Sequence record: MW812341.1
Strand: one strand, 5' to 3'
DNA: 64,000 bases
Each line of letters opens with the position of its first letter. The first letter of the stretch is position 1. Shown here one piece after another: positions 5,776-7,892 of the stretch. A model generated the notes under the pieces. The model saw only the letters and a program-made list of their open reading frames with translations, made no database searches and was not told the DNA's origin. Position numbers and translations under genes: made by a program.

Positions 5776-6024
5776 AAACTACTCCTGCTTTTGCTGCTGT
5801 TTCTATTGCTTCTATTGTTGTTAGTGGCTTTTCCCCCACTGGGGCTCTATCCGTAAGTTGAGAAAAAAACAAACGGCTAAAGATGGTTCCAGCCACCACA
5901 CCCCGGAGGCAGCCATGCAGGTGGCGACAAAAGGTGTGATGGCCGGAATTTGGTTCTGTGTTACCCCCGACCATGAATGATATTTTTTCCGGAATGTCTT
6001 TCGGGAAAAGGGTAACACAAAATG

Positions 6025-6109: not shown

Positions 6110-6190
6110 AGACCGTGGGTGGACTCGAACCACCAGAACCGGTAGGAATCGAACCTCCTGCATCCTAGGATGTTTTCCCAAGACACGGCC
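6110..6190 (-). ncRNA. tRNA-like RNA with two T-arm motifs and no anticodon arm
   Basis: Acceptor GGCCGTG/CACGGTC, T-arm GGTGG-TTCGAGT-CCACC, second AGG-TTCGATT-CCT hairpin upstream; no CCA. Confidence 0.55.
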
Positions 6191-6197
6191 ATAATAG

Positions 6198-6297
6198 GGC
6201 GAACGAAGACAGGATTCGAACCTGTGACCAAGATACCCGCCGGGTATCTCGCTATCCGATTATGAGTCGGGTGTTTATGCCTCTAACTTCATCGTTC
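6198..6297 (-). tRNA. atypical tRNA(CAT) with long variable arm and 8-nt acceptor strands
   Basis: CCGA-CTCATAA-TCGG anticodon arm, GAGATACCC-GGC-GGGTATCTT variable arm, ACAGG-TTCGAAT-CCTGT T-arm, GAACGATG/CTTCGTTC acceptor. Confidence 0.7.
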
Positions 6298-6298
6298 T

Positions 6299-6363
6299 TG
6301 TTTCTGCTGGATTTGAACCAACCTCGTCATTTGGGTGACGACCCCAGACCGACCGGGAGAAAC
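6299..6363 (-). ncRNA. miniature tRNA-like RNA (Trp-like, 6-nt anticodon loop)
   Basis: GTTTCT/AGAAAC acceptor, CCC/GGG D-arm, TCGTCA-CCCAAA-TGACGA arm, GTTGG-TTCAAAT-CCAGC T-arm. Confidence 0.5.
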
Positions 6364-6365
6364 CT

Positions 6366-6590
6366 TTGTAGGGTGAACGCTTGCCATTTAAGGCGGGACT
6401 GATTCTCATCTGCTGGAGCGACGCCGCATAGCACGCTAATTTAAATGAAAAGGCCGCGTTCATTGAATCGAATTGACCGGAGAGAAAGGTGGCTCGTTTT
6501 ATCTCTCGCACTTGTACCCATGCACCCATAGTGAGTCGCTGGGCGGCTCCTTTAATGCGACTCGGGCTGTACCCTACCGTGCTTTCGGTC
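6366..6590 (-). ncRNA. candidate structured ncRNA (about 220 nt)
   Basis: Closing helix GTAGGGT/ACCCTAC, internal GAGTCGC/GCGACTC, GAGAGA/TCTCTC and ATGAA/TTCAT helices; lies inside tRNA array. Confidence 0.5.
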
Positions 6591-6594
6591 AAAC

Positions 6595-7575: not shown

Positions 7576-7651
7576 TGGTGGTTCCGGCTGGTATCGAACC
7601 AACGACCGCGCCATTATGAGTGGCGTGCTCTACCGACTGAGCTACAGAACC
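7576..7651 (-). tRNA. tRNA-Met(CAT) elongator type (or Ile2)
   Basis: 76 nt, loop CT-CAT-AA, G1-C72 pair (not initiator), CCA. Confidence 0.92.
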
Positions 7652-7741: not shown

Positions 7742-7892
7742 TTGGGACACAGAGAATCGAACTCTGGACCGTGACATTGTCGGTTACTCTAGACCGCTAT
7801 GAGCTACACACCTAGCAGTCACGCTAGGCAAGGGAGGATTCGAACCACCGACCTTCCGACTCTGTCACACTTTACCACTAAGCTATATCCCA
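7742..7892 (-). ncRNA. twin-tRNA RNA: two tRNA bodies fused through their anticodon stems
   Basis: Outer TGGGATA/TGTCCCA acceptor, D- and T-arms; anticodon loop replaced by a circularly permuted second cloverleaf. Confidence 0.75.

Follow-up and report, generated by a model that had tools for sequence, protein, structure and literature searches.

An unannotated CAU-anticodon tRNA gene with an 8-bp acceptor stem and an inserted variable arm in jumbo phage pEa_SNUABM_9, a possible derivative of phage tRNA-Ile2

We focused on a tRNA gene with a CAU anticodon and a long variable arm, located in a stretch of DNA of 64,000 nucleotides (nt) that is referred to here as the window. The window matches the genome of Erwinia phage pEa_SNUABM_9 (MW812341.1, 247 kb, Machinavirus) with 100% identity, and coordinates of the record are obtained by adding 62000 to those of the window, which are used here unless the record is named. 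pEa_SNUABM_9 is a jumbo phage infecting the fire-blight bacterium, and a whole-genome scan places all of its tRNA genes on the minus strand between window positions 6000 and 11200. The long-armed CAU tRNA occupies 6197-6297. The Rfam tRNA model RF00005 recognizes it above its gathering score of 29 bits, with E = 1e-4 over the whole window, and R1, a model of the family described below, finds its sole copy in the window here, compared with 44.5 bits for the ordinary CAU tRNA of the phage (Table 1). Given these two scores and a fold that covaries in 16 homologues, the match is not due to chance, and we conclude that 6197-6297 is a genuine, unannotated phage tRNA gene that belongs to a non-canonical family. 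No tRNA is annotated at these positions in the GenBank record, and ARAGORN, when run on the window, does not report one there, even though the same program detects short-loop homologues in the phages Stratton and Caitlin, which it draws with an acceptor stem of 8 base pairs (bp) followed by G and CC. What GenBank does contain is an open reading frame (ORF) that overlaps the 5' end of the tRNA; this ORF is probably spurious, since its start falls in a block that is absent from the close relative ChrisDB.

The cloverleaf of the long-armed CAU tRNA is given in Table 1. An earlier sequence-only reading of this DNA had described a perfect 7-nt CTCATAA anticodon loop, an 8-position acceptor stem with one U-U, a 3' end lacking a complete CCA, a 9-bp variable arm, and a normal CAU tRNA at 7576-7651. 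We recovered all of these elements, the last with ARAGORN, and only the size of the variable arm had to be corrected: it is a true helix, of 10 bp with a GGC loop. The 3' end reads G-C-C-C, whereas CCA is encoded by each of the 15 ordinary tRNAs in the window. The anticodon loop has 7 nt with U33, A37, and A38, as tRNA-Ile2 requires, and A26 sits between the D arm and the anticodon arm. U8 and A14 are missing, and the discriminator that follows the acceptor stem is G (6200) rather than A73. The weak point of the cloverleaf is the D stem, with three pairs and an A.A mismatch; the minimum-energy fold of the whole molecule leaves it unformed (z = -1.4). As for the ordinary CAU tRNA at 7576-7651, it is 79% identical to tRNA-Ile(CAU) of Escherichia coli and 77% identical to metT-type tRNA-Met, values that leave its assignment to Met or Ile2 undecided, and it has a Watson-Crick 27:43 pair, as in E. 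coli tRNA-Met.

Table 1. Features of the long-armed CAU tRNA gene and of the elements that overlap or adjoin it, in window coordinates
Feature	Position	Strand	Details
Long-armed CAU tRNA gene, whole	6197..6297	-	Rfam tRNA 39.1 bits; family model R1 82.4 bits; included in alignment A1
Acceptor stem, 5' strand, GAACGAUG	6297-6290	-	8 pairs, G1 at 6297; 7 of 8 covary in 16 homologues
Linker of two bases, AA, before the D arm	6288-6289	-	No U8
D arm, GUU(A)/GAGGCAU/(A)AAC	6273..6287	-	3 pairs and A13.A22; 7-nt loop with GG
Anticodon arm, CCCGA/CUCAUAA/UCGGA	6255..6271	-	C.A mismatch at 27:43
Anticodon loop, CUCAUAA	6266-6260	-	Anticodon CAU at 6264-6262
Inserted variable-arm hairpin	6251-6229	-	10 bp, GGC loop; flanks UAG (6252-6254) and GUC (6226-6228)
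T arm, ACAGG/UUCGAAU/CCUGU	6225-6209	-	5-bp stem; 4 of 5 pairs covary; 100% of cells paired
Acceptor stem, 3' strand, CUUCGUUC	6208-6201	-	U.U mismatch with U7; last paired C at 6201
3' tail, G-C-C-C	6200-6197	-	Purine discriminator G and CC; A76 not encoded
Open reading frame, 84-amino-acid "hypothetical protein" (GenBank)	6275-6529	-	Overlaps the tRNA 5' end, the mini-cloverleaf, and the block at 6466-6594
tRNA-like mini-cloverleaf	6298-6363	-	Abuts the tRNA upstream without a spacer; ends ..AGAAAC-AA before G1

BLAST and pattern searches showed this tRNA to be one of at least 16 distinct homologues in SPN3US-like jumbo phages of Machinavirus, Erskinevirus, and Seoulvirus, and these keep the 8/5 fold, so that the homologue survey proposed by the sequence-only reading came out in favor of a real structure. 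Besides pEa_SNUABM_9, the members from Machinavirus are ChrisDB, pEa_SNUABM_4/8, pEa_SNUABM_6, Caitlin, Machina, Huxley, and pEa_SNUABM_43, those from Erskinevirus are Stratton/phiEaH2 and Asesino, and those from Seoulvirus are pEa_SNUABM_29, SPN3US, Proteus phage 7, MET_P1, and SPAsTU; two metagenomic contigs, Proteus phage 10, and a 221-kb E. coli replicon contribute further members. The family member usually adjoins tRNA-Asn, on its 5' side, with SPN3US, Proteus phage 10, and the E. coli replicon as exceptions. The exact family pattern has no match in 185,579 representative bacterial and archaeal species genomes, and the anticodon arm alone matches in only 10 of them. Both pEa_SNUABM_29, which has four annotated tRNAs, and SPN3US retain the family member after the loss of most or all ordinary tRNAs that accompany it in pEa_SNUABM_9; around the SPN3US copy, ARAGORN found no ordinary tRNA.

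To assess the fold, we aligned 16 distinct family members (alignment A1) and compared a fixed cloverleaf with shuffles and with slid partners. In this alignment, 92% of the cells are paired, versus 80% in shuffles and 31 to 48% with slid partners, and 15 pairs have changes on both sides, a level reached by none of 500 shuffles. The top G:C pair of the acceptor helix is invariant, while the remaining seven of its eight pairs change on both sides; the eighth, at the bottom of the stem, is GC in 13 members, GU in 2, and UA in 1. Likewise, pair 49:65 of the T stem is GC in 9, GU in 5, and AU in 2. Given this covariation in the acceptor and T stems, the acceptor branch has 8 + 5 = 13 bp in every member of the family, and the alignment thus indicates that the gene is conserved and structurally constrained. 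The anticodon stem is nearly invariant, with position 27:43 mismatched in all 16 homologues, and 12 of them have a perfect decoding loop of 7 nt; in Asesino and Machina, C33 takes the place of U33. In the Seoulvirus copies and Asesino, the 3' acceptor strand carries a single bulged base.

The stem is followed by G in the family and by A in two copies with an AAU anticodon, and then mostly by CC and never by CCA. The tails are GCCC, GCUC, GCCU, GCGA, ACCC, AACC, and, in the metagenomic contig L061, GAUC, so that CCA is encoded in none of 17 family members, compared with all 15 canonical tRNAs of the window. The two AAU copies (tail A-CC-C) are found in the E. coli plasmid NZ_CP173450.1 (221,873 bp; L015:1481-1558), which is the replicon mentioned above, probably a phage and perhaps a jumbo phage genome, and in Proteus phage 10 (223,209 bp; L023:395-472), with L111 listed alongside. 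Bacterial systems seldom use an unmodified A34.

The long variable arm is restricted to five copies, namely, those of pEa_SNUABM_9, ChrisDB, pEa_SNUABM_4/8 (pEa8 type), pEa_SNUABM_6 (pEa6), and L061, a 237-kb metagenomic contig from IMG/VR. In these copies, a hairpin of ~23 nt takes the place of position 46 in the variable loop, which in the other 11 of the 16 aligned homologues is ordinary (5 to 6 nt, UAUUC or UAUUUC). Given that most homologues have such a short loop, the tRNA is of class I and the arm is an insertion specific to this lineage. No public sequencing run contained pEa_SNUABM_9; the four runs that we examined, probably of DNA, yielded contigs only of ChrisDB-like and pEa8-like relatives, and a wastewater contig carries the pEa8-like version of the tRNA. 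Folded alone, the hairpin at 6251-6229 has an energy of -14.4 kcal/mol (z = -4.1). Its pairing is maintained by three compensatory changes, A:U to U:A in ChrisDB, A:U to G:C in the pEa8 type, and a loop-closing C:G to U:A in L061, while the pEa8-type arm also has a 2x2 internal loop. The sequence-only reading had named, as an outcome that would count against it, a variable arm that is a lineage-specific insertion with no conservation of pairing; the first half of this description applies to the arm and the second does not.

The five long-arm copies share the same first 43 nt and differ mostly inside the arm. Since the neighboring tRNA-Asn and the flanks diverge by ~10% among the same phages, the body is strongly constrained, and the arm is the fastest-changing part of the molecule. 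Individual copies differ in the body as well: the U.U in the acceptor stem is present in three of the five, with U:A at this place in pEa6, and L061 has lost G53. The A13.A22 mismatch is exclusive to the long-arm copies, the relatives having A13:U22 and, with it, a 4-bp D stem. Position 46 normally contacts 13:22, so that the loss of this pair and the gain of the arm look like a joint remodeling of the core, albeit as one event, for which no statistical test is possible. Regarding the origin of the arm, recombination with a class II tRNA was rejected, since it is unlike the arms of the two tRNA-Ser and the tRNA-Tyr of the phage. We also rejected a dispersed repeat as its source, given that the 13-nt core of the hairpin recurs only once in the genome, with different flanks. 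This second exact copy of the core (UACCCGGCGGGUA) lies outside the window, within a coding sequence at 192786-192798 of MW812341.1, and is probably a chance match in view of its unlike flanks.

To gain an idea about the ancestry of the family, we compared it with phage tRNAs that share its anticodon arm. This arm, including C27.A43, is preserved without change in over 100 IMG/VR phage contigs. Of the tRNAs that share the arm, 61 distinct ones from IMG/VR phages could be read through the acceptor stem; 57 of them have a 7-bp stem and A73, and only the jumbo-phage family departs from this form; many of these ordinary relatives also lack an encoded CCA. The same anticodon arm is found in a 7/5, A73-CCA tRNA that lies beside a tRNA-Arg downstream of Q in an E. 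coli lambdoid prophage (L016) and is named tRNA-Ile by NCBI PGAP; we take this tRNA-Ile/tRNA-Arg pair to be the ileZ-argN-argO arrangement of Stx phage 933W. From the D arm to the T arm, a short-loop homologue is 84% identical to the prophage tRNA. Moreover, the orthologues of pEa_SNUABM_29 and Proteus phage 7 are annotated as tRNA-Ile2(cat) and tRNA-Ile, respectively. The AAU orthologues fit an isoleucine identity, not a methionine identity, because AAU and CAU are both isoleucine anticodons. On these similarities, the family probably descends from an ordinary phage tRNA of the tRNA-Ile2(CAU) type.

Elements recognized by IleRS are C4:G69, U12:A23, and C29:G41. Counted from G1, they are kept in 15, 14, and all 16 of the 16 members, respectively. 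In E. coli, C4:G69 and C5:G68 are the acceptor-stem elements of TilS (PMC12514573, PMC11947777). The second of these is not kept, position 5:68 being G:C in the long-armed CAU tRNA and variable in the family; both positions are numbered from G1, and the register that an enzyme sees on an 8-bp stem may differ.

The reading that we favor, with a probability of roughly 0.4, is that the long-armed CAU tRNA is an 8/5 derivative of phage tRNA-Ile2 that would be lysidinylated, charged with isoleucine, and used to read AUA. Decoding as tRNA-Ile2 is suggested by the Ile2-type descent, the intact anticodon loop, the AAU orthologues, and the retention of the gene in pEa_SNUABM_29 and SPN3US. In this scenario, host RNase P would excise the RNA from the transcript of the tRNA cluster at the -2/-1 site, host enzymes would trim the 3' end and complete G-CCA by adding either A alone or the entire CCA, host TilS would convert C34 to lysidine, and IleRS would then charge the RNA. 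The position of the RNase P cut is suggested by the invariant G:C top pair, given that in E. coli a G-1:C73 pair blocks cleavage at -1/+1 and shifts it to -2/-1, which is how the 8-bp stems of tRNA-His and tRNA-Sec arise (PMC5499578). In the family, an invariant G likewise faces the C that follows the seventh pair, an arrangement like that of tRNA-His. However, the tRNA-His of the phage itself continues from C73 directly into CCA, whereas in the long-armed CAU tRNA the C is followed by G-CC; with this G intervening, 8 bp, G, and CCA would be the most economical mature form. If the tRNA works as tRNA-Ile2, the inserted arm would be a tolerated, structurally maintained addition and not a serine or selenocysteine determinant.

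Several features weigh against efficient decoding as tRNA-Ile2. The discriminator is G, in place of the A73 of isoleucine and methionine tRNAs and of 57 of the 61 relatives, the second E. coli TilS pair, C5:G68, is replaced by G:C, and neither U8 nor A14 is present. An acceptor branch of 13 bp is regarded as poor for EF-Tu (PMC7609411, PMC9561287). AUA is not an enriched codon, with 4.0 per 1,000 codons in the ORFs of the window compared with 4.9 in E. coli (PMC12514573), and the phage already has a canonical CAU tRNA at 7576-7651. Nor does it bring the enzymes that maturation would call for: neither a CCA-adding enzyme domain (PF01743) nor a TilS-type PP-loop domain (PF01171) is found in the pEa_SNUABM_9 genome, and a Pfam scan of ten ORFs on either side of the tRNA cluster yielded no tRNA-related domain. 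Finally, U33C in Asesino and Machina, the bulged acceptor base in the Seoulvirus copies and Asesino, and the neighboring tRNA look-alikes without usable anticodons suggest a non-decoding role.

The last three observations lead to the best-surviving alternative, which we nevertheless consider unlikely, namely, an RNA that is produced and adopts a tRNA fold without delivering an amino acid in elongation. Such a mimic would act by way of the conserved anticodon arm and the unusual acceptor end; it might bind or titrate a host factor that reads CAU tRNAs, such as TilS, MetRS, or a tRNA-cleaving defense nuclease, or could form a processing module together with the look-alike that abuts it. The operon is rich in tRNA look-alikes with defective anticodon arms, and the family keeps a near-invariant anticodon stem while tolerating a 13-bp branch, the absence of U8 and A14, the 27:43 mismatch, acceptor bulges, and U33C. 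Its members score only 30 to 45 bits with Rfam, compared with 60 to 76 bits for neighboring tRNAs, and one is kept even by phages that have lost most or all of the flanking ordinary tRNAs. The presence of an encoded CCA in 0 of 17 members versus 15 of 15 ordinary tRNAs points in the same direction, except that an encoded CCA is also missing from many ordinary phage relatives. Decoding, on the other hand, fits better with the perfect 7-nt loop in 12 of the 16 aligned members and with the fact that both changed anticodons are AAU, which again specifies isoleucine; in addition, a mimic has no known target.

A second alternative, which we regard as improbable, is an elongator tRNA-Met. Since MetRS relies chiefly on the CAU anticodon, rejection of the 8/5 body by host TilS would leave C34 unmodified, and the RNA would be charged with methionine and read AUG. 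Consistent with this, tRNA-Ile2 with an unmodified C34 accepts methionine (PMC9976931), C5:G68 is not present, and TilS, which measures the distance from anticodon to acceptor, would meet a stem with one pair too many (PMC11947777). Homologues are annotated as tRNA-Met in several records as well, but these names derive from the anticodon only. The AAU orthologues could not serve MetRS, the discriminator is G instead of A73, and the anticodon arm belongs to tRNAs classed as Ile2. Furthermore, the phage already has a canonical CAU tRNA whose Watson-Crick 27:43 pair is like that of E. coli tRNA-Met.

We give little credence to two more speculative scenarios, an identity switch in progress, in which the gain of the arm and the loss of 13:22 would lead to charging by SerRS and to serine at AUG or AUA, and an uncharged decoy directed at a host factor or defense nuclease that reads CAU tRNAs, a decoy role having also been raised by the sequence-only reading. 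Still less credible is the missense tRNA proposed in that reading, which would be charged by SerRS and occasionally read AUG, or AUA if lysidinylated, as serine. Among the determinants of tRNA-Ser is a C:G pair at 11:24, and this position is U:A here. Three unpaired bases precede the hairpin and three follow it, which is not the case for a class II arm, and errors from methionine or isoleucine to serine across the proteome would harm phage proteins too. In favor of serine, SerRS depends mainly on how large the extra arm is, not on its sequence, with a contribution from G73, which also excludes LeuRS and TyrRS (PMC9976931). G1:C72 is also present, and the loss of 13:22 gives the long-arm copies a 3-bp D stem typical of class II. 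The 8/5 tRNA-Sec is accepted by SerRS (PMC5389517), but the enzyme has a preference for 12-bp branches (PMC7609411). A2:U71 replaces G2:C71, which is absolutely conserved in E. coli tRNA-Ser (PMC9976931), and E. coli SerRS reads a class II tertiary fold, whereas the core is class I by descent. Compared with bacterial tRNA-Ser, the RNA thus has the long arm, G73, and G1:C72 but neither G2:C71 nor class II descent. Equally hard to credit is a pseudogene inactivated by the insertion, with the long-arm copies now drifting, for which one could invoke the U.U (3 of 5 copies), A13.A22 (5 of 5), the internal loop of the pEa8-type arm, and the lost G53 in L061, were it not for the 43 nt identical in all five copies next to ~10% divergence, the three compensatory changes in the arm, and the U:A restored in the pEa6 acceptor stem.

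When compared with known systems, the long-armed CAU tRNA would, in its working, be most like phage tRNA-Ile2, yet without A73 and C5:G68. With the tRNA-Ile2 type of lambdoid prophages it has in common an identical anticodon stem-loop, including C27.A43, as well as U12:A23, C29:G41, and C4:G69. The phage and prophage tRNAs are 7/5 molecules with A73 and often an encoded CCA, whereas the jumbo-phage family has eight acceptor pairs, G73, and no encoded A76 and lacks U8 and A14; pEa_SNUABM_9 adds the 23-nt extra arm.

The sequence-only reading had proposed a tRNA-Sec-like body. This holds for the 8 + 5 bp branch, for G73 (a purine throughout the family), and for the long arm, features that bacterial tRNA-Sec (selC) shares (PMC5499578, PMC7609411). 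It does not hold for the D arm, the anticodon, or the relatives: in tRNA-Sec, the anticodon is UCA and the D stem has 6 bp and a tetraloop, compared with CAU and a 3- to 4-bp stem with a 7-nt loop here, and there is no homology, the relatives being class I and the arm an insertion. In PMC5389517 and PMC7609411, a limited check at the keyword level found no 8/5 tRNA other than tRNA-Sec.

Allo-tRNAs, which the same reading had mentioned, and the (8/4) tRNA-Ser and tRNA-His of bacteria and phages resemble the gene in their long acceptor stems, long arms, and non-serine sense anticodons, and some of them occur in phage clusters. In allo-tRNAs, the acceptor branch comprises 12 bp (8/4 or 9/3), and the D stem is long and tRNA-Sec-like (PMC5389517). 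We rejected this identity, given the 13-bp 8/5 branch, in which 49:65 covaries, and the ordinary D arm without a tetraloop. An alternative His-like G-1:C73 reading fails on the 3' side. As in bacterial tRNA-His, an encoded G pairs with the C after the seventh pair and is expected to redirect RNase P, but a true tRNA-His has CCA directly after this C, whereas here G stands between C and CC, and the anticodon is CAU and not GUG; tRNA-His identity was rejected on these grounds. Nematode nev-tRNAs also combine a long variable arm with an isoleucine-box anticodon and raise the same question of mischarging. These are eukaryotic class II bodies with glycine or isoleucine anticodons that are charged with leucine (PMC3333845, PMC4300185), whereas here a class I tRNA has gained an arm, and its G73 argues against leucine.

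The surroundings of the gene contain several further tRNA-like elements. The mini-cloverleaf directly upstream (6298-6363), which is the context in which the 5' end of the tRNA would be processed, consists of a 6-bp acceptor stem, a hairpin resembling a D arm, an "anticodon" stem of 6 bp closed by a 6-nt loop (CCCAAA), and a normal T arm (GUUGG/UUCAAAU/CCAGC). It is conserved in ChrisDB, pEa8, and Stratton, while in Machina, pEa6, SPN3US, and pEa43 its place is taken by a different look-alike with a G1.A72 mismatch. In Machina (L019:389-480), Stratton (L005:284-403), and Asesino (L021:260-380), a "tRNA-Ile(aat)" of 97 to 121 nt is annotated just upstream of the family member, and pEa6 has an unannotated counterpart (L004:1080-1171). 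In the copies of Machina and pEa6, the Rfam alignment covers the acceptor, D, and T arms alone, with 36 nt standing in place of the 17-nt anticodon arm, which makes the isotype call doubtful.

On the other side, at 6111-6190 of the minus strand, lies a tRNA-like RNA that lacks an anticodon arm but has an acceptor stem (GGCCGUG/CACGGUC) and a pair of hairpins resembling T arms (GGUUCGAUUCC and GGUUCGAGUCC). Only pEa_SNUABM_9 has it, and this block of 110 nt is skipped in ChrisDB, pEa8, pEa6, and related contigs. A non-coding block of ~110 to 130 nt at 6466-6594 (minus strand) is absent from ChrisDB. Unannotated DNA of the Pseudomonas jumbo phages Psa21, D6, and HPP-Temi matches most of it with 85 to 87% identity, and a Vibrio phage does so with 77%. 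The block adopts a multi-branch fold (-41 kcal/mol, z = -2.3), and Rfam returned nothing for it up to E = 10. The whole-genome scan also returned a sub-threshold tRNA match at 7825-7892 of the minus strand (26.7 bits, cut-off 29). Lastly, the reverse strands of four family members (L007, L020, L005, and L019) match the Rfam model "Plastid-ycf2 5'UTR" weakly, with 29 to 34 bits compared with a cut-off of 65.7. This model presumably overlaps the plastid trnI-CAU gene on the opposite strand; the match cannot separate Ile2 from Met, since the canonical CAU tRNA of Stratton matches it too.

On the practical side, a gene is missing from the GenBank record, and a doubtful ORF overlaps its place. More generally, these data describe a conserved 8/5 tRNA family with a sense anticodon that jumbo phages have kept even after the loss of ordinary tRNAs. 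If the family decodes, EF-Tu-dependent translation would tolerate the 8/5 geometry in nature, and the family would provide an unusual tRNA scaffold that is ready for use. Otherwise, it would be a well-defined tRNA mimic whose intact anticodon arm could be used to probe for its partner. In either case, the five long-arm copies show a class I tRNA gaining a stable extra arm, which bears on the origin of class II tRNAs and on switches of tRNA identity.

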